Of a DNA stretch of 64,000 bases, positions 5,848 through 55,922 are shown piece after piece. Below the pieces are notes generated by a model. The model was given only the letters and a program-made list of their open reading frames with translations, was not told where the DNA came from and searched no databases. The stretch is taken from sequence record NC_062581.1. One strand, 5' to 3'. Within the stretch, counting starts at the first letter, position 1. The number at the start of each line of letters is the position of its first letter. Both the position numbers and the translations under genes were made by a program.

Positions 5848-5915
5848 GATAATACTCGTATGGTTTATTGATTGCGGTGAGATTGCCGCTTTCAATATCC
5901 TACGAGGTCGTTACA

Positions 5916-42348: not shown

Positions 42349-43616
42349 GCAGTTACCTGTTCATTGGATTGATATTCACGAGAAGCACGAAGACGAACCT
42401 TGGCTTCAGTTGTAGTTTCAGTGACCCACACAGTCATGCAACCATTTTGATATTGGGCATTGACTGTAAATTTCAGTTCTGGAAATTTATCTACTAGTTG
42501 TTGTGTAATGTGTTCTGATACAACTGCATCGGCATTACCCAGGATAGCTTCCGTACCTAGGAAAACATCTTCCAGCGCTTTGGTTGCTACTGTAGTGATT
42601 TCAATAATCTTACTGACATTACGTGAACGTTTCTTTTGTTCTTCCGTACGTACAGGGAAAAGATCATTGACCACATTGTCATTTGGCACTGGTGCACCTA
42701 TAGTCATTTCGGTACGAGTAAAACCTAGATCATGAACAACTTCTTCATCACTGAGAGTATCCTCTACTACAATGGTGAATGTCCAATCCCGACCAATAGC
42801 AGCGGTTACGTTTACTTGGAAGTTTTCATTCTCGTAACGCTCAACCAAACGTTCTTTAATACGGATGTTAGCTGCGCAGATCATTTCATGGGTGTTCAGT
42901 TTAGAATCACCCAGTAGTTCATTAAATACTTCAGCAGCAATCTTCTTTACTTGTTTTGCAAAAACACTTTCTGTTTGGGACATTGTATCACCTTCAAAAC
43001 GGGTAAGTGGTGCTTGTACCACTTCTACATAACAATGGTCAGGTGAGTTATAAATTGCACCCTGTACATTAAACATCAATGGCGCACCCAGTTCGTAGTC
43101 GGAATAATACACCGAAACCGTAGTGTGATTTTCAGGGTAGACCATTTTTACTTGATCACGAATATCTTCTTCTACAAACAGACGAAGTTCTTCTGCCGTA
43201 GAGATAGCGTTGTTGCTAACATCAGCAACAACTTCTTTGGTAACGTTAATCAAGAACTCTTTGAAATCGGTAAACAACGGAATGAGTTCTTCCACTGGTA
43301 AAGTTTGTACCGATTTGACAATCTGGAATTGATCAATATCACGATTAAGCTTTTCACAAACTTTAACCATGTACTGTTCTACATCAGAACCCTTAACCAA
43401 AGTAACGGTAACGGTATGGTAATAGGTACCTAGCTCGTGGGTATCGGGAGTCCATTTGTAATCCGTTGCTAACTTGGCTTCTAACTTAGTAGCAAGTTCC
43501 AGGTTAATGCGACCCACAATGTAAACATACTTCTGCGCATGGGTCAGATAAACTTGGCTGGTCACATCCTGCAAGTGCTTTAATACGGTTTCTTCTACTT
43601 GTTTGATTGTGTCCAT
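42345..43616 (-). CDS. Hypothetical protein
   Basis: 423-aa ORF coupled to rtcB. Confidence 0.8.
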   Translation of the reverse strand: MDTIKQVEETVLKHLQDVTSQVYLTHAQKYVYIVGRINLELATKLEAKLATDYKWTPDTHELGTYYHTVTVTLVKGSDVEQYMVKVCEKLNRDIDQFQIVKSVQTLPVEELIPLFTDFKEFLINVTKEVVADVSNNAISTAEELRLFVEEDIRDQVKMVYPENHTTVSVYYSDYELGAPLMFNVQGAIYNSPDHCYVEVVQAPLTRFEGDTMSQTESVFAKQVKKIAAEVFNELLGDSKLNTHEMICAANIRIKERLVERYENENFQVNVTAAIGRDWTFTIVVEDTLSDEEVVHDLGFTRTEMTIGAPVPNDNVVNDLFPVRTEEQKKRSRNVSKIIEITTVATKALEDVFLGTEAILGNADAVVSEHITQQLVDKFPELKFTVNAQYQNGCMTVWVTETTTEAKVRLRASREYQSNEQVTA

Positions 43617-43617
43617 A

Positions 43618-44880
43618 TTAACCTTTCACACAGAGGAATTGTTTTAGGGTGTGCACGATTTCAACCAGTTCAGATTGTGCCGCCATTACGTCATCAATGT
43701 TCTTGTATGCCTTAGGGGTTTCATCCAGAACACTTGCATCTTTACGACATTCTACACCAGCTGTATCACGGATATGATCTTCCAGTGTAAAAGTCTTTTC
43801 TGCTTGTGTACGGGACATTACTCGACCTGCACCATGTGAACATGAACAGAACGATTCTCGGTTTCCTTTACCGCGGACAATGAATGACTTAGCACCCATA
43901 GAACCTGGAATGATCCCCAGTGTTCCTTCACTTGCGTTGACTGCACCTTTACGTGTTACAATAACATTCTCACCAAAGTGGCGTTCTTGTGATACGTAGT
44001 TGTGGTGGCAGTTAATTGCCTCTAGATCCGAATCAATTGGCAGGCCCAGTGTTTTGTGGATGGCATCCAAAGCAGCGTGCATCATCACGGAACGATTTAG
44101 TGCAGCAAAGCGTTGTGCCCAAGATACGGCTTCAACGTAGTCATCGTAGTAACGTGAACCTTCCGGCAGATAAGAAAGATCTTTATCCGGAAGGTGGATA
44201 AAGAAACGCCCCATTTCTTCTTTGGCTTTGCTAATGAAGTAAGTACCAATAGCGTTACCAATACCACGCGAACCCGAGTGTAGCATAATCCATACACGAT
44301 CTGTTTCATCAAGACACAGTTCAATGAAGTGGTTACCCGTACCCAGTGTCCCTACATGGTTCCAAGCACGCTCGGATGCTTTCTTCAATTTAGGGTGGCG
44401 TTCAACAATGCTATCCAATTGCTTCCGTAGTTTTGCAGCTTCTTCACGAACAGCTACGGTTGGGTGATTGAAGATATTAACGGTACCAAATGCACCACGA
44501 TCATTCTTACCACCATTGTCAGTACGACCATGTGGCACACATGCTTCAATGGCTGCACGAAGATGTCCCAGAGAGTCTGGAAGCGCGTCTGAAGAGAATC
44601 TCAGACGTTGTGCTGCCATTCCGCATCCAATATCAACACCTACCGCAGAAGGGATGATAGCGCCTTTGGTAGCAATAACAGAACCAATGGTTGCACCTTT
44701 ACCCACATGAACGTCTGGCATCACTGCTACGTGGGAATAAATGAATGGCAATGCTGCAATGTTTTTCAATTGCTTTACTGCATCGGGTTCTACTGGTACA
44801 CCTACGGTCCAGCCTTTAATTGGCTTAGCTCCGTCAATAGGCTCACCACCTAGAATTTCAAATGTTTTACTCTGTTTCAT
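43618..44880 (-). CDS. rtcB: RtcB RNA-splicing/repair ligase
   Basis: MPDVHVGKGATIG, VGVDIGCG, GTLGTGNHF, LHSGSRG, HHNY, IPGSMG, SCSHGAGR and DETPKAYK motifs. Confidence 0.96.
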   Translation of the reverse strand: MKQSKTFEILGGEPIDGAKPIKGWTVGVPVEPDAVKQLKNIAALPFIYSHVAVMPDVHVGKGATIGSVIATKGAIIPSAVGVDIGCGMAAQRLRFSSDALPDSLGHLRAAIEACVPHGRTDNGGKNDRGAFGTVNIFNHPTVAVREEAAKLRKQLDSIVERHPKLKKASERAWNHVGTLGTGNHFIELCLDETDRVWIMLHSGSRGIGNAIGTYFISKAKEEMGRFFIHLPDKDLSYLPEGSRYYDDYVEAVSWAQRFAALNRSVMMHAALDAIHKTLGLPIDSDLEAINCHHNYVSQERHFGENVIVTRKGAVNASEGTLGIIPGSMGAKSFIVRGKGNRESFCSCSHGAGRVMSRTQAEKTFTLEDHIRDTAGVECRKDASVLDETPKAYKNIDDVMAAQSELVEIVHTLKQFLCVKG

Positions 44881-45961: not shown

Positions 45962-46843
45962 TTATTTTAAGAACGTACCACATGATGCTTTTACGTCTGT
46001 ACCTACGCGAGGAATAACTTTGACTCGTGCCTTAGGCAAGCGTCTACGAATATAACCTGCCAGGTAATTAATCTGTCCTTCTAAGCTTTCTTGTGAGCTA
46101 TGACCATCGGGTGGATTGTACCGAACAATGTTCCAATTGACATCCAGCTTATACGTATCAAGTTGATCACAGATCTTTGCTACGTCTGCAAGATCATCAT
46201 TTTCATTACGAATGAATGCATAATGAATCTTTGGTTTTTTACCGGTGGCTTGTTGCCAGGACATTAGCTTAGCAAACGCCGCACTCGGATTAAGTGCTTT
46301 AGGTATCCAGCGTTTACGAAACTCGGGTTTTAAGGAATACACCGAGTAATAAATTTCTGGATAAAGATCTGGATGTGTGAAGATTTCAGTTAATCCACGG
46401 TTCATCATTTCCTGTGGAAAAATGGTAGACACCAAAAACTTATATTCCAAACCGTAACGTGAAGCACGTTCCGCTAAACCATCCAAAATGATGTCGGCAT
46501 TGTCTAGGAAGATCTTGTTGGCTAAAGGTTCACCACGAGCCATGAAATTGAAATGTACTTTACGAGCCATTGTTTTAGTGGCGTAGTATTGTAGTACACG
46601 TTCAGCTTGATCCCAGTATTCTTCAATGGTTACATCACGTAGTTTGTTTTGTCCCGTAGCTGTTAAATGGCACATACGGCAGGCTTGATTACAGCCTGTC
46701 TGAGAAGACAAATAAACAATGAAGTAATCATCGCTCCGACGTACATACCGTGCCTCTAACATCCCTGGGTGATCTTCAAAGCGGTGTTCAAAGTTAACGG
46801 ACTGATCAAGTTGTGATATGTGTTGTTTAAAGATAAGTTCCAT
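45962..46843 (-). CDS. RlmN/Cfr-family radical SAM RNA methyltransferase-like protein
   Basis: YLSSQTGCNQACRMC (CxxxCxxC), FMARGEPLAN, RYNP and C-terminal ASCG motifs. Confidence 0.85.
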   Translation of the reverse strand: MELIFKQHISQLDQSVNFEHRFEDHPGMLEARYVRRSDDYFIVYLSSQTGCNQACRMCHLTATGQNKLRDVTIEEYWDQAERVLQYYATKTMARKVHFNFMARGEPLANKIFLDNADIILDGLAERASRYGLEYKFLVSTIFPQEMMNRGLTEIFTHPDLYPEIYYSVYSLKPEFRKRWIPKALNPSAAFAKLMSWQQATGKKPKIHYAFIRNENDDLADVAKICDQLDTYKLDVNWNIVRYNPPDGHSSQESLEGQINYLAGYIRRRLPKARVKVIPRVGTDVKASCGTFLK

Positions 46844-47927: not shown

Positions 47928-48011
47928 GGGTATTCCAATAGTAGAGGTACTGCAATCGTAAAGACCATTCTTTACTTATACATTGTCGCACTGAGTATTT
48001 TATGGCATAAA

Positions 48012-48031
48012 GCTTTCCCCTAGGGGAAAGC
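48012..48031 (-). terminator. Intrinsic terminator after tRNA-Leu(TAG)
   Basis: GCTTTCCC-CTAG-GGGAAAGC followed by TTTATG on the - strand. Confidence 0.8.
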
Positions 48032-48043
48032 ACTATACTTGTT

Positions 48044-48129
48044 TGGTGCGGACGAAGAGACTCGAACTCTCACGGGCTAAGCCCGCTGGAACCTAAATCC
48101 AGTGCGTCTACCAATTCCGCCACATCCGC
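48044..48129 (-). tRNA. tRNA-Leu(TAG)
   Basis: GCGGATG...CTGGA-TTTAGGT-TCCAG, long variable arm, TTCGAGT T-loop, encoded CCA. Confidence 0.95.
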
Positions 48130-48133
48130 TTGT

Positions 48134-48155
48134 ATATTATTACACTTGTGGTATT
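48134..48155 (-). promoter_or_regulatory. Bipartite phage promoter
   Basis: AATACC-ACAAGT-GTAATAATAT, 4 nt upstream of tRNA-Leu(TAG). Confidence 0.7.
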
Positions 48156-48166
48156 CTTTTACAGTA

Positions 48167-48889
48167 TTAGGTTATTTGAATTGACCACTCATTGTTTTCC
48201 CAACTGTCTTTTTGTTTTGTTATAAGAGCTTTATGAATTGTAGTGTAATTTATTTTGGTATATTTAGCAGCATCCATAAGTGTTTCAAATGTGTGAGCTT
48301 CGCCTGTAACTTTATTAGCCGCCATTGTAATAAACCATGTTCTCTTTTTACTAGATATCTTAGGCCATGGTTTTATTGACATGTGTCTGAAAGCGTAGTT
48401 GCAATAAGCGTATTGTCCAGCCATGTTACCCCGTAAATGTTTGGCTAGGGTAGGTAATGGTACACCATATTTCTCTGCTGCTCGTCGAATAGATTTCTCT
48501 GTAAATATCTCACCGCTATTAATGTTAAGAATTTGTATTTCTATTGGGATAGGGGTAAGCTTATTATCAACCGCATGAATAACATTACCTGATCCTGTTA
48601 CCCATTCTAAGTTAGTTTTTGTATTGTTTGCTTTATTGCCGTCTTTATGATTAACTTCAAGTTGTTTAAATGGAATATGTTGTAAATGCATTGGTCGTTT
48701 AACATAGGTAATTGCATATATGCGGTGTACTCGATACGCCCTATGTTTCATTCCAGGTGAGGTTAAAACAATATTCATGTATCCTGATTTTGTTTTATGT
48801 TGTTTAAGTATTTTGCATGTTCGGTAATTAAACAATACCCCTTCGGGACTTACTCCGATCCTATTGTCATTTGGAAATGGTTTATACAT
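48167..48889 (-). CDS. NUMOD4-HNH homing endonuclease
   Basis: RIGVSPEG.LFN, YRVHRIYA, EVNHKDGNKANNTKTNLEWVT..GN..HA; C-terminal HTH repeats; free-standing between two tRNA-Leu genes. Confidence 0.9.
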   Translation of the reverse strand: MYKPFPNDNRIGVSPEGVLFNYRTCKILKQHKTKSGYMNIVLTSPGMKHRAYRVHRIYAITYVKRPMHLQHIPFKQLEVNHKDGNKANNTKTNLEWVTGSGNVIHAVDNKLTPIPIEIQILNINSGEIFTEKSIRRAAEKYGVPLPTLAKHLRGNMAGQYAYCNYAFRHMSIKPWPKISSKKRTWFITMAANKVTGEAHTFETLMDAAKYTKINYTTIHKALITKQKDSWENNEWSIQIT

Positions 48890-48930
48890 TTTAAGTCCTG
48901 TCTACTATTACACTATACAATAGGACATAA

Positions 48931-48950
48931 AACCAACCCTAAGGTTGGCT
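48931..48950 (-). terminator. Intrinsic terminator after tRNA-Leu(TAA)
   Basis: AGCCAACC-TTAG-GGTTGGTT followed by TTATG. Confidence 0.8.
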
Positions 48951-48958
48951 ATGTTTTT

Positions 48959-49044
48959 TGGTGCCTGAAGGGGGACTCGAACCCACCAATCCCGAAGGCG
49001 GGAGTGTTTAAGACTCCTATCTATACCAATTCGATCATTCAGGC
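48959..49044 (-). tRNA. tRNA-Leu(TAA)
   Basis: GCCTGAA/TTCAGGC acceptor, GGAGT-CTTAAAC-ACTCC, long variable arm, CCA. Confidence 0.93.
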
Positions 49045-49050
49045 GTATAC

Positions 49051-49089
49051 TTTCTAGAATGGTGTGTCTACCGATTTCACCATCCGGGC
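49051..49089 (-). pseudogene. tRNA-Leu-like 5' half only
   Basis: GCCCGGATGGTGAAATCGGTAGACACA (acceptor 5' strand plus D arm); no anticodon-stem partner, T arm or 3' strand. Confidence 0.65.
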
Positions 49090-49094
49090 TAATT

Positions 49095-49860
49095 TGATCC
49101 AGCATCCAAAACGTACAGGTTTGGTTAACAACAAACACAAGGTCGTTGGTAGATCGGTCGCTGGAAGAACCTTTTCATCCTAGTACATAGCCACAACGAA
49201 CTGCGGTAAACCGCTAGAGTTGTAACCGGCGAGCTAGGTCTATCTACTTACTCGCCTACAGCGCTTCAGGACGATGGAGGGCAAGTAATTGAGAATCGAG
49301 GGTAACCAATTAGACGCTTTGCTAGCTCCGGCTTTCACGGAGTGCCGACTAACCCATTACCATGACCAGTAGGCAGACTGGGTAGCTGGGACACAAGGTC
49401 CAGTTCGGGAATATGGGGTTGCGTGTAAGAAATCAGCCAGGGATCTGAAACATGTTTTCTTACACCAACCAGTGACGGACATCTGATCCGTTGCAGCCGA
49501 GTCTGCCGCCTCTTCGGTATGCGCCTTAGTAACCGGGACTATCCAGTCTTTGGGGTATCATGGGTCGGGCTTTGAGCTTCCCTGTTAACTGACTATTCTA
49601 GTCTTTTGTCAGTCGTCGTAGGGGTTCATTAAAATCTCACACCATGCAGCTCGGTGCCCTAGTCTGAGGATTAATCAGGCATCAGTGTAAGACTTGCCTA
49701 TCCCTTCCGGGCTAGGGCTTCACCGTTCCAATGGGCTCGGTGTATGAGATTGATAGTAACGATTTAACGCTCCTTGGCAGCTTTCCCAATTCACGCAACC
49801 TTTACCGAACGTTAGAGGAAACCTCCTTACCCAACATCCGAACTATCTATCTCATGCTCT
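49095..49860 (-). ncRNA. Large (~770 nt) structured non-coding RNA of unknown class
   Basis: No ORF >=60 aa; GC-richer than flanks; many long stems (10 bp 49423-49432/49456-49465; 8 bp 49372-49379/49500-49507; 7 bp 49633-49639/49745-49751). Confidence 0.7.
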
Positions 49861-49863
49861 TGA

Positions 49864-50538
49864 CTACTCGTGAGTAGTTTCTAAACTGTGTATTACGCAA
49901 ACTGAACCATCGTCTAACGCGGTCTTGGCGTTGTAATCAATTTGATTATAGACACCACCATGAAATTGGAAGATTCGATCACGCCAAGTACTATCCAGCT
50001 TTAAAGCAGGACAATCAGATTTACGACCTTCGCACAGAGCGTTGATTGTTACTGAACCTGCTTTAGTTACGTGGAGAGTAATCTTGAACGGCACACCTAG
50101 TGGTACGTTTTCCAAAACAGTAAAGTTATTGATTACTGGATCGGTAAAGCTACTACGGAAACCAGCCGTAAGTTTTCCTTTATTCCAGAAAACTTTCAAT
50201 GGTGGAGTAGTAGCATTTTTAACGTGTACTTGAGCAACTACCACTTTCTTAGCTGAGTTAACTCGAACTAATGTCATCTCTTGTCGAGACCAGTGATGTG
50301 CGGCACTATCCATAGGCCAGTAGTTTGCTTCTTTCCATTCACACCGCGTACGATGTGTACTTTTACTAGATGCACCTAATGTTGGTGCTGAGAGTTGTAT
50401 CGAACCGTCTTCTAATTGACTGATCACATCCGCACACTTCACCAAGGCCTCTGAACCAATTAATTCCCAAGCAACAGGATTATTGATACTGACCGGTAAG
50501 GGAGTGGCTATTAAGTAATGATTAATGTCAACTAACAT
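49864..50538 (-). CDS. Polysaccharide lyase family 7 (alginate lyase)
   Basis: PL7 motifs RTRCEWKE, VVAQVH and FHGGVYNQ. Confidence 0.85.
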   Translation of the reverse strand: MLVDINHYLIATPLPVSINNPVAWELIGSEALVKCADVISQLEDGSIQLSAPTLGASSKSTHRTRCEWKEANYWPMDSAAHHWSRQEMTLVRVNSAKKVVVAQVHVKNATTPPLKVFWNKGKLTAGFRSSFTDPVINNFTVLENVPLGVPFKITLHVTKAGSVTINALCEGRKSDCPALKLDSTWRDRIFQFHGGVYNQIDYNAKTALDDGSVCVIHSLETTHE

Positions 50539-50561
50539 TTCTTTACTCTCTTTTAATAGGT

Positions 50562-50622
50562 GGAGCGTCCTAGTCTAACTAGACGACAGCTAATGCTGAT
50601 TGGATTTGCACCAATGTACTCC
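50562..50622 (-). ncRNA. Circularly permuted tRNA-like RNA (unit B, degenerate)
   Basis: GGAG-TAC-[ATTGG TGCAAAT CCAAT]-[CAGC ATTA GCTG]-TC-[GTCT...GGAC]-G-CTCC. Confidence 0.55.
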
Positions 50623-50628
50623 GGGTAC

Positions 50629-50697
50629 GAGAGTGTCCTTGGCCACTAGACGAACTACCCTAATGGATAGTAACGGGGTCGAACCGTTGTTTCTCTC
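50629..50697 (-). ncRNA. Circularly permuted tRNA-like RNA (unit A)
   Basis: GAGAG-AAAC-[AACGG TTCGACC CCGTT]-[ACTATCC ATTA GGGTAGT]-TC-[GTCT AGTGGCCAA GGAC]-A-CTCTC; all four stems pair in the permuted register. Confidence 0.8.
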
Positions 50698-50703
50698 TAT
50701 CAC

Positions 50704-50795
50704 TGGAGGAAGAATAGGGATTTGAACCCTAGGGCAGTCCTTAGACCACCAGAGCTTTAGCAAAGCCCCTCGTTAAACCACTCCGACATTCTTCC
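50704..50795 (-). tRNA. tRNA-Ser(GCT)
   Basis: GGAAGAA/TTCTTCC, GGGCT-TTGCTAA-AGCTC, long variable arm, CCA. Confidence 0.93.
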
Positions 50796-50801
50796 TGTAA
50801 T

Positions 50802-50877
50802 TGGCGGGCTATGATGGACTCGAACCACCAACACGCGGCTTTGGAGGCCGCTGTTCTGCCAATTGAACTAATAACCC
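50802..50877 (-). tRNA. tRNA-Trp(CCA)
   Basis: GCGGC-CTCCAAA-GCCGC; canonical 76-nt cloverleaf with CCA. Confidence 0.95.
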
Positions 50878-50989
50878 TAAACCTGTACGGGTTTGATTTA
50901 ACTGAGCTAACCGTGATCCTCAGTCCCTTCGCTAACCTTTGGGAAAAGTTAGCTTACGCTTGATTGGAGACTTAACGACAGTCTCTCGT

Positions 50990-51011
50990 ATACTATTACA
51001 CAACCAGTATT
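50990..51011 (-). promoter_or_regulatory. Bipartite phage promoter
   Basis: AATACT-GGTTGT-GTAATAGTAT. Confidence 0.8.
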
Positions 51012-51017
51012 TTATTT

Positions 51018-51725
51018 TTAGAAAGGCACGTAAGTGTACGATCTAGAATACCTAGCAAAATCACTAATCCGAATTCGTCCATGGTAGCCGGTAACTGCCG
51101 GAGTAGAACTGGCTTCAAATCCTAAACGTAGTCGCGTTATATTAGCCAAGCTATCTTGCGGAGTAAATGATTGTAGATTATAAACCGTTGTTGTTCCACG
51201 AGCCAAAGATTGTTGTAGGCCATTACAGAATATTTTGATTTGGCCATCTTTACATACCAGAGCGTAATGATTCAATACGTTGGTAGCATTTGCTTTGGTA
51301 ATAGCCGGAGCCCAAGTATTGTTAGCTACTCCAAATGAAGTACCAAAATGTAACCTGTTTTGGAATCCTTGATCACCATACCGTGATAACACACCTGTAC
51401 CAGCCGTAGAACTTAACAAACTAAATTCATGTGCATAACTAGCTGCTGCTGTGGTGTTTTTAGACGACCATTCCACAGTCCAGTTTTTGCCCTGCAGATT
51501 TAAAGGGATAGCAAATGTAATAAGTAGTCCAGCAGACGTACTAGGAAAAGACAAAGAACTACGTCCATCAATAGGGTTAGCTGCGTCAGCTACCGCTCCT
51601 CCCGATAAAACGATTGTGGGGTTAGTACCCATCAACTCCGTATTGGTTACAGGGTCATATAAAAAGATAACGTTACCGGTGTCTTCCGGGGGCGATTCTA
51701 ACAGCCCCAATAAAGATTCAAGCAT
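51018..51725 (-). CDS. LamG/concanavalin-A-like lectin domain protein (probable tail-associated)
   Basis: WTVEW, NHYALVCKDGQIKIFCNG and GYHGRIRISDFARY beta-sandwich motifs. Confidence 0.7.
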   Translation of the reverse strand: MLESLLGLLESPPEDTGNVIFLYDPVTNTELMGTNPTIVLSGGAVADAANPIDGRSSLSFPSTSAGLLITFAIPLNLQGKNWTVEWSSKNTTAAASYAHEFSLLSSTAGTGVLSRYGDQGFQNRLHFGTSFGVANNTWAPAITKANATNVLNHYALVCKDGQIKIFCNGLQQSLARGTTTVYNLQSFTPQDSLANITRLRLGFEASSTPAVTGYHGRIRISDFARYSRSYTYVPF

Positions 51726-51766
51726 GGGATAATTCCAAATAGTAAATACACACTATTGGGACATAA

Positions 51767-51786
51767 AGCCAACCCGCAGGCTGGCT
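51767..51786 (-). terminator. Intrinsic terminator
   Basis: AGCCAGCC-TGCG-GGTTGGCT followed by TTATG. Confidence 0.8.
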
Positions 51787-51789
51787 ATG

Positions 51790-51981
51790 TTAGTCATGTC
51801 GAATTCCGTAATCAATTACTTTATTCATTTGTTCTTGAGTGGGGATTCTGTTGCGGGCTCGTTCAGCACATTCGATATCAAATTGTTTAATTCTAGCCTG
51901 CCATTCTTTTATTTGTTTTGGTGTCAGTTGGATTGGCTTTATGTTACCATTGGCTAAATCAATCAGTTTCTTTAGGCTCAT
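51790..51981 (-). CDS. Small helical paralog 1
   Basis: MSLKKLIDLA...IPTQEQMNKVIDY. Confidence 0.7.
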   Translation of the reverse strand: MSLKKLIDLANGNIKPIQLTPKQIKEWQARIKQFDIECAERARNRIPTQEQMNKVIDYGIRHD

Positions 51982-52151
51982 ATTGAACAAGTCTTTGCTA
52001 ACAATTCAGGGCCAACTCTTTTATTTCTAACTTGAGTTTCTAGTTGAATATCCAAAAGCCTTTGCTTTGCTCTGGCCAATATTAACCGTTCTAAATAATC
52101 CGGACCACTTGGTTTTAACTCGGCGAGGTCCATTAAAGCTTGAAGACTCAT
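51978..52151 (-). CDS. Small helical paralog 2 (not in ORF track)
   Basis: MSLQALMDLAELK...RVGPELLAKTCSI*, 57 aa, ATGA-coupled at both ends. Confidence 0.7.
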   Translation of the reverse strand: MSLQALMDLAELKPSGPDYLERLILARAKQRLLDIQLETQVRNKRVGPELLAKTCSI

Positions 52152-52330
52152 AAACTAATCACCTTATTTAAAAGTTCTTGTGTAGGAATAGATGCTTTGA
52201 GTAAAGCATTTAATCGTTCATCTGCAGCAGCCATACGTTCATTCATTTGTTTAATACGGGCAGCTCTTTCTTCTGGTGGTTCTTGAGACCGTCTATATTC
52301 AATTAGTTCTTCTAAGCTTTTCATATTCAT
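52148..52330 (-). CDS. Small helical paralog 3
   Basis: MKSLEELIEY...IPTQELLNKVISL. Confidence 0.7.
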   Translation of the reverse strand: MNMKSLEELIEYRRSQEPPEERAARIKQMNERMAAADERLNALLKASIPTQELLNKVISL

Positions 52331-52341
52331 CGATCAATTAC

Positions 52342-52416
52342 TCAGGTTAATGCGAATAGCCAATCGTCATAGGTTCCTTTGAAACCATGAATTACTGCAC
52401 ATTCATAAGCACTCAT
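52342..52416 (-). CDS. 24-aa micropeptide
   Basis: MSAYECAVIHGFKGTYDDWLFALT*, ATGA-coupled to the upstream ORF. Confidence 0.5.
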   Translation of the reverse strand: MSAYECAVIHGFKGTYDDWLFALT

Positions 52417-52547
52417 AGATTCACCACTCGATTTAACATTTCTGGAGTAACTTGTTGGGCTTTCATTTGTGCTCTTAAGATACGTGTAATTATAACAGTC
52501 CGTGCCCTTGCTTTACGGAGAAATTCTTCATGTGACGAATAACCCAT
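52413..52547 (-). CDS. Small helical paralog 4 (not in ORF track)
   Basis: MGYSSHEEFLRK...VTPEMLNRVVNL*, 44 aa. Confidence 0.6.
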   Translation of the reverse strand: MGYSSHEEFLRKARARTVIITRILRAQMKAQQVTPEMLNRVVNL

Positions 52548-52595
52548 AATTTTCCAGCAAGTTGGTACATGTTCTTTTGTCATAACGTAAACCTT

Positions 52596-52850
52596 TTAAT
52601 GCATGAATGTTGATCCAATAACGTGACAGTTACAACCACACAAATTATGCTCGTCAGTTCCATCTATCACAATAGTTAAAGTTGGATACCAACCACGTTT
52701 AGCAAAGACTAACTTACCCCAAACAGATTCTGTATCTTCACGTTTCTCCACATGGGCTAATTCATTAAACTTCTTTATTAACCAATCAGAATTAACAGTA
52801 CGGTCTTCGTTAAAGTATTGTTGTCCACATCTATCACAACACGGTACCAT
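52596..52850 (-). CDS. Small Cys-rich (putative Zn-binding) protein
   Basis: CCDRC...CGCNCH; GGAG RBS. Confidence 0.7.
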   Translation of the reverse strand: MVPCCDRCGQQYFNEDRTVNSDWLIKKFNELAHVEKREDTESVWGKLVFAKRGWYPTLTIVIDGTDEHNLCGCNCHVIGSTFMH

Positions 52851-53058
52851 GGGGTAGTTCCTCCGAGAATGTTTTAAGGAATATGCTTTCAGCTATTACC
52901 CAGATTTCATTAGTCTTAGAATCTTTAGTAGGTTCTAGATTGGTATACACTACCATTGGCCAACTACAGTCTTGTCCATGCTTACCAACACAGATAACAT
53001 GAAATCGAATACCCGATGGTGAGAAGTATGTGTGGTTTGGTTTAATTGATTCAAGCAT
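52834..53058 (-). CDS. DUF1653-like small protein
   Basis: FHVICVGKH...MVVYTNL...WVI...F pattern. Confidence 0.6.
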   Translation of the reverse strand: MLESIKPNHTYFSPSGIRFHVICVGKHGQDCSWPMVVYTNLEPTKDSKTNEIWVIAESIFLKTFSEELPHGTVL

Positions 53059-53066
53059 TAATGAAC

Positions 53067-53633
53067 CTATTGGGTTTGGACACTTACCGATACACCACCG
53101 GATGCGGTGAATCTAGTAAAGCGGGGTTTGATTTCTATTCCGTACTGCTTACACCATTTACGCACTGAGTTATCTGATACACCATATTTCTCTCCAACCT
53201 TTACCATGGACATTATTAACATGTCTGCTTCTAGTTGTTCTTTATCTGGACGTTCTACTTTTCTTCGACCCAAAGCAGAACATTCCGAACTGCAATATAC
53301 ATCAAGATCTTTACTAAGTACACACTGACATTGTTCACAAAGTTTAGTTGGATATTGTTTTGGGTCAATACCCATACGGCGCATCCAACCATGCAGCTTT
53401 TGGTGTTGTGATTGCGTAAGTACTAATAAATTTTCAGGGTGATTATTCATTTTGTTTTCGTCTAGATGATGTACCTCTTCATCTTTAGCCAACGGACGAC
53501 CCATGAACTCTTCTGCTACCACGCGATGCTCATATACCCAGCCATACATCTTTGGATTCATTAAAGCATGTAAATGATCAGGTAGGTGTAGAGCAATGTA
53601 CCCATTAATAACTTTTTGTTTGATCTTTTCCAT
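53067..53633 (-). CDS. HNH homing endonuclease
   Basis: YEHRVVAEEFMGRPL...VHHLDENKMNNHPENL; CxxC...C...C zinc motif; C-terminal HTH. Confidence 0.9.
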   Translation of the reverse strand: MEKIKQKVINGYIALHLPDHLHALMNPKMYGWVYEHRVVAEEFMGRPLAKDEEVHHLDENKMNNHPENLLVLTQSQHQKLHGWMRRMGIDPKQYPTKLCEQCQCVLSKDLDVYCSSECSALGRRKVERPDKEQLEADMLIMSMVKVGEKYGVSDNSVRKWCKQYGIEIKPRFTRFTASGGVSVSVQTQ

Positions 53634-53673
53634 TTACGTCTCCCGTCCATGGTTCGAATAGATATAACGAAAT

Positions 53674-53697
53674 AATGGAAGCCGAAGCTTCCATTAG
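53674..53697 (-). terminator. Hairpin/terminator after tRNA-Asn
   Basis: TAATGGAAGC-TTCG-GCTTCCATTA, 10-bp stem. Confidence 0.75.
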
Positions 53698-53701
53698 AAA
53701 T

Positions 53702-53789
53702 TGGCTGGTAAGGCTGGACTCGAACCAGCGGTGTGCTTTCGCAAACGGATTAACAGTCCGCCCCCTGCTACCAACTCGGGTACTTACCA
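53702..53789 (-). tRNA. tRNA-Asn(GTT) with long variable arm
   Basis: U1-A72, G73, GCGGA-CTGTTAA-TCCGT, variable hairpin TGC-GAAA-GCA, CCA. Confidence 0.88.
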
Positions 53790-53797
53790 ATTTTAAA

Positions 53798-53835
53798 ACG
53801 TATCGGCAATGACTCTACCAACTGAGCTATTTACC
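53798..53835 (-). pseudogene. tRNA-like 5' half only
   Basis: GGTAAATAGCTCAGTTGGTAGAGTC (D arm) without T arm or 3' strand. Confidence 0.55.
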
Positions 53836-53858
53836 AATGTATCGACAGTTCTTCATGT

Positions 53859-53880
53859 ATACTATTACACATCAAGTACT
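53859..53880 (-). promoter_or_regulatory. Bipartite phage promoter
   Basis: AGTACT-TGATGT-GTAATAGTAT. Confidence 0.75.
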
Positions 53881-53969
53881 TTTAATCTGTATTGGGATGC
53901 CAGGCTTCCACTGGATGATTGTTTTACCTAGACTCCCTTTAAAGATCTAGCAATGCTTGAAACTATTAC

Positions 53970-54079
53970 CTCAACAGTTCCCTAGTTACTGATTACCCTG
54001 CGCGCCAGGTCGTACGTTAACTAGGTAGGCGTGGAACGACGCCTCGTTTTAGTTCTGCACCGAAGTGCCTTCTGTTGAG
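53970..54079 (-). ncRNA. Putative four-way-junction RNA
   Basis: CTCAACAG/CTGTTGAG closing stem; GCAC-TTCG-GTGC; AGGCGT/ACGCCT; CCTAGTTA/TAACTAGG. Confidence 0.6.
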
Positions 54080-54080
54080 C

Positions 54081-54158
54081 AGCCCTCCTTAGATACCGAA
54101 TCTAAATCTCTCTATCCGTGGTATGGACAGAGCGCTTTACCGATTAAGCTAGGTGGGC
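54081..54158 (-). ncRNA. tRNA-like RNA with 8-bp anticodon stem, no CCA
   Basis: GCCCACC/GGAGGGC, GCTT-AATCGGTA-AAGC, CTCTGTCC-ATACCAC-GGATAGAG, TTAGA-TTCGGTA-TCTAA. Confidence 0.7.
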
Positions 54159-54165
54159 ATTGAAT

Positions 54166-54251
54166 TGGTGGATGAAGGAAGGAATTGAACCTCTAGGAGA
54201 ACCGGCGGGGTTACAGGCCGCTGACAGTAGCCATCTGTCTCTACATCATCC
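54166..54251 (-). tRNA. Non-canonical tRNA-Tyr(GTA)
   Basis: Loop CTGTAAC; 8-bp acceptor with one U-U pair; 5-bp D stem GACAG/CTGTC; A73 and CCA. Confidence 0.75.
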
Positions 54252-54259
54252 GTAAAACA

Positions 54260-54394
54260 TTTGAAACTAACTATGGAGAAAGGCGACTCGTTTTATCTCC
54301 TGACTTGTACCCATGCACCCATTATTGAATCACCGGGCGGCTCCTTTAGTGTGATTCGGGCTGTACCTTACCGTCGTTGTTAGTTAATTTCAAA
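54260..54394 (-). ncRNA. Putative structured RNA between tRNA-Pro and tRNA-Tyr
   Basis: Outer TTTGAAA..AACTA/TAGTT..TTTCAAA; inner GAATCAC/GTGATTC and GGAGA/TCTCC. Confidence 0.5.
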
Positions 54395-54396
54395 AC

Positions 54397-54472
54397 TGGT
54401 CAGAGTGGGAGGACTTGAACCTCCGACCACGTAGTCCCAAACCACGCATTCTACCAACTGAACTACACTCTG
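54397..54472 (-). tRNA. tRNA-Pro(TGG)
   Basis: CAGAGTG/CACTCTG, CGTGG-TTTGGGA-CTACG, CCA; 76 nt. Confidence 0.96.
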
Positions 54473-54479
54473 ATGAAAC

Positions 54480-54556
54480 TGGCGGTTCCTACGGGACTTG
54501 AACCCGTGACCTCTCGCGTGACAGGCGAGCGCTCTAACCAACTGAGCTAAGGAACC
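54480..54556 (-). tRNA. tRNA-Asp(GTC)
   Basis: GGTTCCT/AGGAACC, CTCGC-CTGTCAC-GCGAG, G73 and CCA. Confidence 0.96.
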
Positions 54557-54562
54557 TAAAGC

Positions 54563-54667
54563 ATTGAGAGTAACGGCGCTTTAACCGATTAAGCTAACGG
54601 CCCTGTTGGATAGGCGGGCCTTCCGAGTCAAGGGATTTGAACCCAAGTACCTCCGTTACTCTCGAAT
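54563..54667 (-). ncRNA. Circularly permuted tRNA-like RNA, YrlA/Y-RNA-like (unit C)
   Basis: 11-bp outer stem GAGAGTAACGG/CCGTTACTCTC extended by ATT/AAT with bulged C; T-loop GGG-TTCAAAT-CCC; closed acceptor GGCCC/GGGCC; D arm GCTT-AATCGGTTA-AAGC. Confidence 0.8.
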
Positions 54668-54835
54668 CTATGCTACTTGCTGTTCACGTTTACTGACCAT
54701 GTAATCAGCATCGTTTACAGCTTCCCGAAGTATCTGTTTATCTAGTTTAAGATTCTTCCAACTTAGCCTGCTGCAACAGCGGCAATCTGCTGGACCAAAG
54801 TCATCTAAAGGACGTGGTTTAATCTTAACTTTCAT
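54668..54835 (-). CDS. 55-aa protein inside the tRNA cluster (not in ORF track)
   Basis: GGAG RBS; MKVKIKPRPLDDFGPADCRCCSRLSWKNLKLDKQILREAVNDADYMVSKREQQVA*. Confidence 0.65.
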   Translation of the reverse strand: MKVKIKPRPLDDFGPADCRCCSRLSWKNLKLDKQILREAVNDADYMVSKREQQVA

Positions 54836-54856
54836 AGACTACTCCGAGAAAAGAAT

Positions 54857-54934
54857 TGGTGTGAATGAAGAGGATCGAACTCTTGACTTCCAGGGTCACA
54901 TCCTGGCACTCTAACCGACTGAGCTACATTCACC
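54857..54934 (-). tRNA. tRNA-His(GTG)
   Basis: GTGAATG/CATTCAC, CCAGG-ATGTGAC-CCTGG, genomic G at -1, A73, CCA. Confidence 0.92.
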
Positions 54935-54964
54935 ATCAAGCGTCGAGGCAGCAACTGCTCTCGT

Positions 54965-54986
54965 ATACTATTACATACCAAGTATT
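54965..54986 (-). promoter_or_regulatory. Bipartite phage promoter
   Basis: AATACT-TGGTAT-GTAATAGTAT. Confidence 0.8.
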
Positions 54987-55070
54987 ATTTTACATTGGGT
55001 CAAAACTCTTGCAGCTGGACCTGCACTATTGCGCCAGTCCAACCACATATAGTTGTATACAATCAACTAC

Positions 55071-55922
55071 TTAACCGATAAACACAATCTTAGTGTTTAC
55101 TCGACCCAGTTTGGCTAACACTCGGTAGAGACGATTAATGTTGATGTCGTCACTATTAATACGCTTAGCAGCATTAGTGATAATCAGTGTATGAAAGTTA
55201 GTATGGAACTGTGGGAAGTTAGCTAGCAAATGATCATTCAACCATTTCGATTCCCAAAACCATTTACGATGGGTAACTAATTTTTCACCATCGTTACTGC
55301 TGGTCATGATGCTAATTTCCGCTGATGGATCAGCCGCCATATACGCCAATGCTTCTCGAACATTAAAGTGTTGACACAGTTGATCTTCAATGAGTTGCTT
55401 AGCTTCATTGTCCAACGCCAGCAATTTAAACAACACCGACCATGAACATTGATCAATACGTGAATGGATGTCATCGTGATCAAAATGCACAAACCCACGA
55501 CCTAGCGTTTGTTTGAATGCATTAACAAAAGTAGTTACGTTACCCAATGCCGGTCCATTTAAAAACGAAGTATTGTCACGAACGCGTTTCCAATCGGGTA
55601 CATCGCCTTCTAACAAATCCAAGTTATTTGCTTTTTGGATTATGCGTGCCATTTCCTTAGCAATGATTTCCGTAGGTTCATCTGTATCCAGTTCCGCTGT
55701 ATCCAATGCTTCCTCAGTAAACCAGTAATGCAATGCATCATACCGTTTAAGAGTAAACTGTGAGATCACCTCACTAACTACCGGTACGTCTTCGCACAGG
55801 TGCTGTAGGCCCGTTGGGCTATTTTTACCATTACCAAAAACATAAGTTTCTAGTGGTTTATATTTCAAAGGTAACAAATCCCTAGGGTTTTCTATTCTTG
55901 CGGTCATTGCTGCTATGTTCAT
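55071..55922 (-). CDS. Hypothetical protein
   Basis: 283-aa ORF downstream of the promoter at 55980-56001. Confidence 0.8.
   Translation of the reverse strand: MNIAAMTARIENPRDLLPLKYKPLETYVFGNGKNSPTGLQHLCEDVPVVSEVISQFTLKRYDALHYWFTEEALDTAELDTDEPTEIIAKEMARIIQKANNLDLLEGDVPDWKRVRDNTSFLNGPALGNVTTFVNAFKQTLGRGFVHFDHDDIHSRIDQCSWSVLFKLLALDNEAKQLIEDQLCQHFNVREALAYMAADPSAEISIMTSSNDGEKLVTHRKWFWESKWLNDHLLANFPQFHTNFHTLIITNAAKRINSDDININRLYRVLAKLGRVNTKIVFIG

Follow-up and report, generated by a model that had tools for sequence, protein, structure and literature searches.

Why would a phage tRNA gene cluster carry RNAs that resemble tRNAs but lack an anticodon, and are these RNAs part of a dedicated system or merely remnants of tRNA genes? 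We addressed this question in a 64,000-nucleotide window (the whole stretch of DNA analyzed, to which all coordinates below refer) that is 100% identical to positions 241,261-305,260 of Pseudomonas phage Psa21 (accession no. MK552327.1), a phiKZ-like jumbo phage, and forms the right end of its genome. A sequence-only reading of the region from 48.0 to 55.0 kb had described 9 tRNA genes sharing transcription units with three circularly permuted tRNA-like RNAs, one extended-anticodon tRNA-like RNA, two tRNA 5' halves, and at least three other structured RNAs, with RtcB and an RlmN-like enzyme just downstream and an Rnl2-like ligase at 5916, and had proposed that these form a tRNA decoy/repair system. 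Our analysis confirms that the described elements exist, albeit with some reclassified, whereas the proposed interpretation is only partly supported.

All features of the interval lie on the minus strand. ARAGORN identified 9 tRNAs, of which Rfam confirmed 8 at the gathering score: tRNA-His(GTG) (54857-54933; 66.6 bits), tRNA-Asp(GTC) (54480-54556), tRNA-Pro(TGG) (54397-54472), tRNA-Asn(GTT) (53702-53789; 52.2 bits), which has a long variable arm and an identical copy in L016, tRNA-Trp(CCA) (50802-50877), tRNA-Ser(GCT) (50704-50795), tRNA-Leu(TAA) (48959-49044), and tRNA-Leu(TAG) (48044-48129). (D6, Phabio, RVTF4, and designations beginning with L refer to related jumbo-phage genomes or contigs.) The ninth, called Gly-ACC at 54081-54158, scores only 19.5 bits against a threshold of 29 and is a degenerate tRNA (54082-54158) with an 8-bp anticodon stem and a noncanonical T loop; the syntenic element in L011 and L149 is a canonical Ile-like tRNA. 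The supposed extended-anticodon RNA (54166-54251) is an atypical tRNA-Tyr(GUA) with a CCA end and a 5-bp D stem with an AUGGCUA loop, which matched the tRNA-Sec model at 22.8 bits. It aligns with the canonical tRNA-Tyr of D6 and L011 with 11 compensatory pairs, and its anticodon loop is a normal 7 nt in RVTF4, the Psa21 version having only a C.C mismatch at the 31-39 position.

The sharing of transcription units is inferred only. A promoter-like motif, TGTAATAGTATAC, has 7 matches in the window against 2.0 expected, and 6 of these are on the minus strand inside the island; one copy (54963-54975) heads the His unit, and others lie at 53857-53869, 50988-51000, 48900-48912, and 48132-48144. Terminator-like hairpins follow three of the units, after tRNA-Asn (53673-53696), tRNA-Leu(TAA) (48929-48950), and tRNA-Leu(TAG) (48012-48031). 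The island reads as about four or five units, each headed by this motif. A 55-amino-acid ORF with a CRCC motif (54668-54835) is embedded in the tRNA operon; its DNA is conserved in RVTF4, and it had no Pfam hit. A PL7 alginate lyase gene (49864-50538; PF08787, 5.7e-35) lies inside the RNA transcription unit.

The three circularly permuted, anticodon-less tRNA look-alikes are designated cp1, cp2, and cp3. In cp1 (54566-54663), an 11-bp closing stem is followed by a T arm, a capped acceptor-like hairpin, and a D arm. Across four phages the T arm, capped hairpin, and D arm are almost unchanged, although in three of them the T stem has two U.U mismatches, while the 9- to 11-bp closing stem is rewritten in each phage yet still pairs: 8 of 9 pairs change on both sides, and 92.7% of cells are paired against 25 to 49% with slid partners, a level reached by 0 of 500 shuffles. 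A cp1 covariance model scored 114.7 bits. cp2 (50629-50697) is an exact circular permutation of a tRNA-Glu-like body with segment lengths exactly those of a tRNA; its 5-bp closing stem corresponds to the anticodon stem, and it has a 4-nt variable loop, a T arm, a 7-bp acceptor stem capped by a tetraloop, and a D arm, but no anticodon loop. All 21 of its 21 pairs hold in both Psa21 and L149, and all six stem substitutions are compensatory, forming 3 compensatory pairs, but this comparison rests on only two sequences and its shuffle control is correspondingly weak (56 of 500). cp3 (50562-50622) is a degenerate second permuted copy with a 4-bp closing stem, a UGCAAAU T loop, and a D arm collapsed into a hairpin, and no homolog was found in relatives.

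Four further structured RNAs are present, the largest of which has two domains and lies within an 819-nt noncoding stretch (49045-49863) between the lyase gene and tRNA-Leu(TAA). Domain A (49475-49860; ~385 nt) has 102 pairs in an alignment of 9 sequences, with 90% paired against 33 to 43% with slid partners and 35 pairs with double changes, and contains a covarying kissing loop between 49598-49603 and 49537-49542. A variable linker and domain B follow (49096-49474), with a domain B core at about 49123-49298 that has invariant loops CCCUCCAUC..CUGAAGC and GAUGAAAAG and 27 pairs, 9 with double changes, in 9 sequences. This RNA lies directly upstream of tRNA-Leu(TAA) in every related phage examined, with tRNA-Trp or tRNA-Ser upstream in most. 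The second RNA, N6 (53900-54079), is a ~180-nt two-domain RNA that always follows the preceding tRNA-like element; an alignment of 4 phages has 73 pairs, 31 with compensatory changes, although this count includes the tRNA-like part. N7a (54260-54394) is a ~135-nt RNA closed by a long stem that is always just upstream of the Tyr or Tyr-like tRNA and has 95.7% identity to D6 and 80% to L149, but only 2 of its 47 pairs are compensatory, so covariation support is weak. Finally, a three-hairpin leader between the promoter motif and tRNA-Trp (50882-50987) is conserved in 5 phages, with 31 pairs, 11 of them compensatory. None of these RNAs, cp1 and cp2 included, reaches an Rfam threshold.

Could these elements simply be nonfunctional debris of tRNA genes, shuffled by homing endonucleases? 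Two HNH endonuclease genes (48167-48889 and 53067-53633; HNH_3, NUMOD1) lie in the island, and both tRNA 5' halves proposed from sequence exist. The Leu-like remnant (49057-49089) folds as an 8-bp hairpin with one compensatory change between Psa21 and D6, by inspection, and occurs only in the two phages that carry the HNH gene downstream; the Asn-like remnant (53805-53835) consists of an acceptor strand plus D arm at a position where D6 has two tandem tRNA-Asn genes. These halves, together with cp3 and the Gly-ACC element, which are degenerate and lineage specific, look like tRNA gene remnants or decay linked to homing endonucleases rather than parts of a system, and show that the island also collects tRNA debris. 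However, the compensatory evolution of cp1, cp2, N6, the leader, and the large RNA argues for selection on structure, and debris is therefore an unlikely explanation overall, already disfavored for cp1, cp2, and the large RNA.

The anticodon-less RNAs keep the tRNA elbow nucleotides (U8, A14, G18-G19, G53, U54-U55-C56, A58, and C61), have a closed acceptor end, and lack a cleavable anticodon loop. The sequence-only reading suggested that they could be decoys or inhibitors of host anticodon nucleases of the PrrC, RloC, PARIS, or VapC type, or ligation substrates of the phage ligases. The protein genes it invoked are confirmed: RtcB (43618-44880, minus strand; Pfam, 4.1e-129) has an 82% identical ortholog in RVTF4; an RlmN/Cfr-like radical-SAM protein without the N-terminal domain (45962-46843, minus strand) was recovered below the curated cutoffs (Cfr, 2.8e-9; TIGR00048, 5.7e-15, far below its cutoff); and an ATP-dependent RNA ligase family protein (PF09414 plus a PHA02142 OB domain) is encoded at 5868-7256 on the plus strand. 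The RlmN-like and RtcB genes follow the island in at least Psa21 and RVTF4, and jumbo phages commonly pair tRNAs with RNA ligases (PMC7824862). The island also encodes all four GUN-anticodon tRNAs, and its odd tRNA-Tyr is shared with unrelated P. syringae phages (92 to 93% identity to nickie-like phages), which fits pressure from tRNA-targeting defense. Nevertheless, anticodon nucleases are generally thought to recognize the anticodon loop itself, which these RNAs lack, there is no evidence that the RNAs have ligatable ends, and the second ligase lies 42 kb away. Nothing computed here shows decoy activity, ligation, or any functional tie to either ligase beyond synteny, and co-occurrence with RtcB is seen only within one clade of related phages and so is not independent evidence. 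This specific version is plausible, but we consider it unlikely on present evidence.

The parallel with the rsr-yrlA-rtcBA arrangement of Salmonella raised the further possibility that cp1 is a true Y RNA that would bind a Ro60/Rsr-type protein, either host encoded or an unrecognized phage one, and redirect PNPase-type RNA decay. YrlA (RF02553) is a bacterial tRNA mimic recognized by tRNA enzymes (PMC4201824), and cp1 aligns end to end and collinearly with its model, sharing the order of closing stem, variable region, T arm, capped acceptor-like stem-loop, D arm, and closing stem, the elbow nucleotides, and a nearby RtcB gene; moreover, some Pseudomonas species (P. fulva) carry YrlA and Ro60 (PMC4201824), and YrlA occurs in Ro60-encoding phages. 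However, the score of 20.5 bits is far below the gathering score of 69, and a tandem tRNA junction in L008 scores 22.9. cp1 also lacks the Ro-binding motif (GNCGAAN0-1G), its stem sequence is not conserved, and it is embedded in a tRNA array rather than lying next to rsr, while cp2, with only a 5-bp closing stem, is a bare permuted tRNA. No Ro60/TROVE gene was found in the protein genes tested, most of them next to the island, and the 518-amino-acid neighbor of RtcB gave no Ro60 match by sequence or fold. TROVE proteins are reported only in group 2 and 3 jumbo phages (PMC7824862); phiKZ-like phages belong to group 1, so none would be expected here. The Salmonella parallel is weakened accordingly, and a true Y RNA appears improbable.

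The position of these elements also allows a role only in cis, as RNase P/RNase Z punctuation marks and stabilizers that cut the long transcripts into tRNAs, the lyase mRNA, and the small-ORF mRNA. cp2 and cp3 lie between tRNA-Ser and the lyase start codon, cp1 follows the 55-amino-acid ORF in Psa21, and the YrlA of M. smegmatis, which like cp2 has a 7-bp acceptor stem (capped in cp2), is cleaved by RNase P (PMC4201824). But RNase P and RNase Z chiefly recognize the acceptor/T-arm half of a tRNA, leaving selection on the closing stem and D arm unexplained, and in RVTF4, L011, and L015 cp1 lies between tRNAs or after a leader and not next to an ORF; we therefore regard this reading as doubtful. 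Least likely of all is that cp2 is a permuted pre-tRNA gene like those of the alga Cyanidioschyzon merolae, whose ends would be joined by RtcB and whose capped acceptor would be opened by RNase P to give a working tRNA. The 3' half does precede the 5' half, with exact tRNA dimensions, and the phage encodes RtcB, but the flanks (GUGAUA upstream; GUACCC in Psa21 and GCUUAU in L149 downstream) cannot form a plausible 7-nt anticodon loop, and the downstream flank is not conserved. In addition, no bulge-helix-bulge motif was seen by eye in the cp2 flanks, bacteria are not known to have a tRNA-splicing endonuclease, and the acceptor end is capped by a tetraloop, with no CCA or trailer.

The explanation we favor, tentatively, is that cp1 and cp2 are stable mimics of the tRNA body that occupy a protein recognizing tRNA shape, potentially a host tRNA-targeting toxin or nuclease or an RNA repair or decay factor. 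The noncoding RNAs of the island are discrete, fold independently, and are packed between tRNAs with spacers of 0 to 10 nt, so that the RNase P and 3'-end processing that matures the neighboring tRNAs should release them as stable species; being tRNA bodies opened at the anticodon loop and closed at the acceptor end, cp1 and cp2 could not be aminoacylated, decoded, cut in an anticodon loop, or modified at a 3' end. Our analysis demonstrates the sequences, folds, conservation, covariation, and synteny of these elements, whereas their transcription, processing, stability, binding partner, and benefit to the phage are inferred. No partner protein was identified, and the cp RNAs are confined to about ten related jumbo-phage genomes or contigs, with cp1 missing from D6, indicating that they are dispensable within the clade. 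In support of this view, cp1 sits between tRNAs as a tRNA gene would.

The 0.8-kb RNA, N6, and N7a would be further members of this tRNA-linked set. In its genomic context, and in that respect only, the large RNA resembles GOLLD and ROOL, large ornate RNAs of phages and prophages: these are likewise RNAs of unknown function, with a size of 700 to 850 nt, many helices with strong covariation, a pseudoknot-type kissing loop, and a location next to phage tRNA islands. However, no Rfam match was found even at E values up to 10 in Psa21 and five relatives (RVTF4, L008, L012, L014, and L022), and the hosts differ, the large RNA belonging to Pseudomonas-type jumbo phages. It is also made of two separable modules; L016 has domain A alone next to tRNA-Leu, and only domain B was found in the Phabio region searched. 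A further comparison is with the species 1 and 2 stable RNAs of phage T4 (rnaC and rnaD), which are not circularly permuted and share no sequence similarity, but which are small stable RNAs of unknown function encoded at the end of a phage tRNA cluster that also holds a homing endonuclease, with rnaC having a tRNA-type T arm and an acceptor-like stem.

The stretch at positions 48000 to 55100 is 100% identical to Pseudomonas phage Psa21 (MK552327.1, Tepukevirus, 305,260 bp, host P. syringae pv. actinidiae), with window position 1 corresponding to record position 241,261. All genes from 40.8 kb to the end lie on the minus strand, and the deposited record annotates 8 tRNAs and no other RNA in this stretch. 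The sequence-only reading had described a cluster of nine tRNA genes interleaved with permuted tRNA-like and other structured RNAs, and our analysis confirms that observation. ARAGORN called nine tRNAs, of which eight (Leu-TAG, Leu-TAA, Ser-GCT, Trp, Asn, Pro, Asp, and His) were confirmed with the Rfam tRNA model (RF00005) at scores of 43 to 74 bits, above the gathering score of 29. The ninth, called as Gly-ACC at 54081 to 54158, reaches only 19.5 bits and has an 8-bp anticodon stem and an off-consensus T loop. At the same syntenic position, two contigs from the IMG/VR collection (L011 and L149) carry a canonical Ile-like tRNA and the related phage D6 carries another degenerate version, indicating that the Psa21 element is a decayed or repurposed tRNA. 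Among the confirmed genes, tRNA-Asn(GUU) at 53702 to 53789 has a type II body, with a long variable arm, a Tyr/Ser-like D arm, and the discriminator G73, which is unusual in bacteria and phages; an identical 88-nt copy is present in the IMG/VR locus L016.

The earlier suggestion that these RNAs share transcription units is reasonable, but it rests on motif positions only. A 13-mer, TGTAATAGTATAC, occurs 7 times in the window when up to 2 mismatches are allowed, against 2.0 expected, and six copies are on the minus strand inside the island, each in front of a block of RNA genes or an HNH gene. The motif and the first transcribed bases (ACGAGAG) are conserved in the related phages, and terminator-like hairpins follow tRNA-Asn, tRNA-Leu(TAA), and tRNA-Leu(TAG). 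A 55-amino-acid open reading frame at 54668 to 54835 (MKVKIKPRPLDDFGPADCRCCSRLSW...) also sits inside the tRNA operon; it is conserved at the DNA level in phage RVTF4 and probably in L149, has no Pfam match, and may encode a small zinc-binding protein.

The first of the permuted tRNA look-alikes, cp1 (54566 to 54663), consists of an 11-bp closing stem, a 5-nt variable region, a T arm (GGGUUCAAAUCCC), 8 unpaired nucleotides, a 5-bp hairpin with a 12-nt loop, UA, a D arm (GCUU-AAUCGGUUA-AAGC), and the return strand of the closing stem. Homologs exist in RVTF4, in the IMG/VR contigs L011 and L015, and in one further IMG/VR contig, L151, which was found by an exact motif match only. The internal arms are almost invariant, while the closing stem has a different sequence in each phage and always pairs: 8 of its 9 pairs change on both sides, 92.7% of all cells are paired compared to 25 to 49% when partners are slid, and none of 500 shuffles reaches the observed values. 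L015 additionally repairs the two U.U mismatches of the T stem to U-A and C-G. A covariance model built from the four aligned sequences scored them at 105 to 115 bits and found nothing beyond this training set in 165 kb of related loci.

We compared cp1 to YrlA (RF02553), the bacterial Y RNA that mimics tRNA. Both cp1 and cp2, the second look-alike, have the tRNA-like domain in the YrlA order of T arm, acceptor-like stem-loop, and D arm, closed by a stem, and cp1 aligns end to end with the Rfam model, but only at 20.5 bits against a gathering score of 69. A tandem-tRNA junction in the contig L008 scores 22.9 bits, which is the type of false positive that Chen et al. (PMC4201824) warned about, and it is therefore the covarying closing stem, not the score, that establishes the permuted topology. 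The other defining features of YrlA fail. The GNCGAAN0-1G motif near the 5' end, which is the Ro60 contact, is absent from the 5' strands of all four cp1 sequences, and the expected Ro60/TROVE gene within about 4 kb on the same strand was not found, with no TROVE domain among the 19 proteins of the window that were examined, most of them flanking the island. Two open reading frames of 518 and 423 amino acids lie directly downstream of the phage RtcB gene (40792 to 43616, minus strand). The 518-amino-acid protein is about the length of Ro60, but it has no family assignment, its homologs occur only in this jumbo phage clade, it has no match in the PDB by sequence, and its AlphaFold model is poor (pLDDT of 64.7, pTM of 0.35) and has no significant structural match; the 423-amino-acid protein has no family assignment either, apart from a subthreshold LPD29 match. 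TROVE proteins are reported only in group 2 and 3 jumbo phages. The phiKZ-like phages belong to group 1, so none would be expected here. Thus cp1 has the shape of YrlA but cannot be filed as a member, although a Y RNA function involving a host Ro60 remains among the rival explanations.

The second look-alike, cp2 (50629 to 50697), is an exact circular permutation of a tRNA-Glu-like body, with a 5-bp closing stem (the anticodon stem), a 4-nt variable loop, a 5-bp T stem with the loop UUCGACC, a 7-bp acceptor stem capped by a tetraloop, UC, a D arm, and A26. Its only homolog is in L149, again right after a tRNA and before the lyase gene. The two differ at 10 positions, of which six form three compensatory pairs, one in each of three helices, three are in the cap (AUUA to UUCG), and one is in the D loop; all 21 pairs hold in both, although with two sequences the shuffle control is weak (56 of 500). 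We considered whether cp2 could be a permuted pre-tRNA gene of the Cyanidioschyzon merolae type, in which joining the termini rebuilds a complete tRNA with its anticodon loop, but the flanks of cp2 in Psa21 and L149 give no conserved 7-nt loop, and this possibility is nearly excluded. The third look-alike, cp3 (50562 to 50622), is a degenerate tandem copy for which we found no homolog. The original count of three permuted tRNA-like RNAs is therefore correct, with two well supported and one that looks like decay. A custom pattern scanner for permuted tRNAs was too permissive, with 41 hits in 1.8 Mb of unrelated control DNA, and it missed cp1, so it was abandoned. In L150, a related 315-kb contig, a tRNA-Glu-like gene with an insertion of about 28 nt in place of the anticodon loop lies between the leader and tRNA-Trp (about 1618 to 1710, minus strand), representing another tRNA-Glu body without a normal anticodon loop.

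The RNA at 54166 to 54251, initially described as a tRNA-like RNA with an extended anticodon, is an atypical tRNA-Tyr and not an anticodonless mimic. It has no RF00005 hit, but it aligns with the canonical tRNA-Tyr of D6 and L011, keeps the loop CUGUAAC (anticodon GUA), and ends in ACCA. Its D arm is a 5-bp stem with the loop AUGGCUA and its variable arm is shortened; RVTF4 has a perfect 5-bp anticodon stem, while Psa21 and L149 have a C.C pair next to the loop. The stretch at 54166 to 54258 is 92 to 93% identical to one in unrelated 112-kb P. syringae phages (nickie, phiK7B1, ZY21, and Nican01), where it is unannotated in nickie and appears to be the element annotated as tRNA-Tyr in ZY21, suggesting horizontal exchange among phages that share a host. 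The two tRNA 5' halves listed in the sequence-only reading are remnants. The Leu-like one (49057 to 49089) folds as an 8-bp hairpin, with one compensatory change between the two phages in which it occurs, Psa21 and D6. These are the two phages in which a different tRNA-Leu(TAA) allele plus an HNH endonuclease gene follows, which looks like a homing cassette that replaced the resident tRNA gene; two HNH homing endonuclease genes (48167 to 48889 and 53067 to 53633) lie inside the Psa21 island. The Asn-like remnant (53805 to 53835) lies where D6 has the first of two tandem tRNA-Asn genes. Gene debris of this kind is one of the rival explanations for the elements of the island.

The 819 nt between the stop codon of the PL7 alginate lyase gene (49864 to 50538) and tRNA-Leu(TAA) hold no open reading frame longer than 48 amino acids and encode a large structured RNA. 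Patchy homologs were found in D6, RVTF4, and Phabio, and motif scans of IMG/VR added L008, L011 (the same sequence as L009 and L012), L014, L022, L149, L150, and the partial L015 and L016. In every phage the RNA lies directly upstream of tRNA-Leu(TAA), and where the upstream flank was included it is preceded by tRNA-Trp or tRNA-Ser(GCT), with spans of 706 to 852 nt. In Psa21 the lyase gene is embedded between the permuted tRNA mimics and the large RNA; the lyase gene intervenes in Psa21, L149, and probably L150, and the large RNA therefore forms its 3' untranslated region in these three; in D6, RVTF4, L011, and L022 the lyase is absent and the RNA directly follows tRNA-Ser or tRNA-Trp. In domain A (49475 to 49860), 102 proposed pairs are 90% canonical across 9 sequences, compared to 33 to 43% with slid partners, and 35 pairs (80 cells) change on both sides, compared to 6 to 18 pairs in the slid controls, values that no shuffle out of 500 reaches. 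A loop-loop interaction also covaries, with GACUA and UAGUC in six sequences and GAUCA and UGAUC in RVTF4, L022, and L014. Domain B (core at about 49123 to 49298) has 27 pairs, 9 of them with double changes, plus invariant unpaired strings. The domains are separable, as L016 has domain A alone directly before tRNA-Leu, and only domain B was found in the Phabio region searched. A shorter RNA in L015 (950 to 1070) and L016 (about 3520 to 3630), both on the minus strand, shares the invariant string CCCUCCAUCGAACUGAAGCG of domain B but has a different 3' half and ends in a terminator, and it may be a distant relative of domain B. A metagenome scan with the domain B motif gave only chance matches among the rows returned, none of them homologous by nhmmer, and further IMG/VR motif scans added only L149, L150, and L151, indicating that the families are small.

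Searches of Rfam release 15 gave no hit at E values up to 10 for the large RNA of Psa21 or of five relatives (RVTF4, L008, L012, L014, and L022), which excludes detectable membership of GOLLD, ROOL, RNase P RNA, group I or II introns, and tmRNA. Short look-alike strings (GCAAGUCC, GGCAGGAUGUUGGGUAAG, and ACUCCACCC) had suggested RNase P RNA, but no P4 partner strand exists. Likewise, the R/S-like strings CAGACUAGGG and GAUAGUCC, which had suggested a group I intron, turned out to be a hairpin and a loop-loop interaction and not P7. The evidence for a group II intron was a single 16.6-bit partial hit (E = 0.32) in RVTF4, and ARAGORN called no tmRNA, with Rfam giving only a 9.4-bit partial tmRNA match against a threshold of 47. 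As a large, covariation-supported multihelix RNA encoded in a phage next to tRNAs, the RNA nonetheless matches by context what is written about GOLLD and ROOL, which are phage encoded, near tRNA islands, and of unknown function. Our literature searches found no paper describing such an RNA in jumbo phages.

Three smaller RNAs complete the set. N6 (53900 to 54079) always follows the degenerate or Ile-like tRNA, and together with that tRNA it shows 31 compensatory pairs across four phages, while the leader preceding tRNA-Trp has 11 compensatory pairs across five phages. N7a (54260 to 54394) is highly conserved and so offers little covariation (2 pairs). Species 1 and 2 RNAs of phage T4 (rnaC and rnaD) are the classical precedent for orphan stable RNAs in a phage tRNA cluster, but they are not permuted tRNAs.

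Of the three proteins highlighted in the sequence-only reading, RtcB is certain (PF01139, full-length match above the Pfam cutoff at 432 bits, 4.1e-129) and has an 82% identical ortholog after the island in RVTF4. The RlmN-like protein scores 55 bits against TIGR00048, for which the cutoff is 290, and matches Cfr in the PDB at 2.8e-9, with an alignment that starts near RlmN residue 78 to 100, such that the N-terminal domain is missing; on these below-cutoff matches it appears to be a distant RlmN/Cfr relative. An equivalent gene follows the island in D6, RVTF4, and Phabio. The ligase at 5868 to 7256 belongs to the ATP-dependent RNA ligase family PF09414 (67 bits, above the Pfam cutoff, plus the PHA02142 OB domain at 84.7 bits), an assignment made here at the level of the family.

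Taken together, these analyses establish that the island encodes a set of conserved structured RNAs beyond tRNAs, two of which are tRNA bodies without an anticodon loop or a free acceptor end. It is by inference only that we propose that flanking tRNA processing releases these RNAs and that they act in trans, and the same holds for any binding of Ro60 or another protein and for any self-assembly of the large RNA. We tentatively favor a role as mimics of the tRNA body that bind a shape-recognizing protein, a reading that falls short of even odds, while cis-acting processing signals remain among the alternatives. The proposal that the mimics form a tRNA decoy/repair system with the phage ligases is a sub-case of this view that finds only partial support; we consider it doubtful, and it is weakened by the fact that anticodon nucleases mostly read the loop that these RNAs lack. 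A bolder and unlikely possibility that is still compatible with the data is that this clade carries an RNA-based toolkit built around its tRNA island. One part would be a new class of ∼0.8-kb ornate RNA, convergent in function with GOLLD and ROOL and possibly self-assembling or binding tRNA elbows, and the other would be Ro-independent permuted tRNA mimics that neutralize host proteins attacking tRNAs or that work with RtcB. If true, this would be the first case of noncoding tRNA decoys used as a phage counterdefense.

Both tRNA mimicry by Y RNAs and the large ornate phage RNAs are open problems in which no function is known. This locus offers a compact system, tractable by phage genetics, in which both kinds of RNA sit in one inferred transcription context beside RtcB: a YrlA-shaped RNA that lacks the Ro-binding motif, a bare permuted tRNA, and an unclassified 0.8-kb RNA with a covarying kissing loop. 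As far as the collections searched show, these RNAs are confined to about ten related jumbo phages. If the mimics bind defense or repair proteins, the known phage countermeasure against tRNA-targeting immunity (replacement tRNAs plus ligases) would gain a second arm in the form of noncoding decoys. The large RNA is also a ready candidate for structural work of the kind that showed GOLLD and ROOL to form cages. Finally, the island encodes all four GUN-anticodon (queuosine family) tRNAs, namely His, Asp, Asn, and Tyr (53702 to 54933, minus strand). This is the set cleaved by colicin E5-type anticodon nucleases, and RlmN methylates A37 of the His and Asp tRNAs in E. coli.
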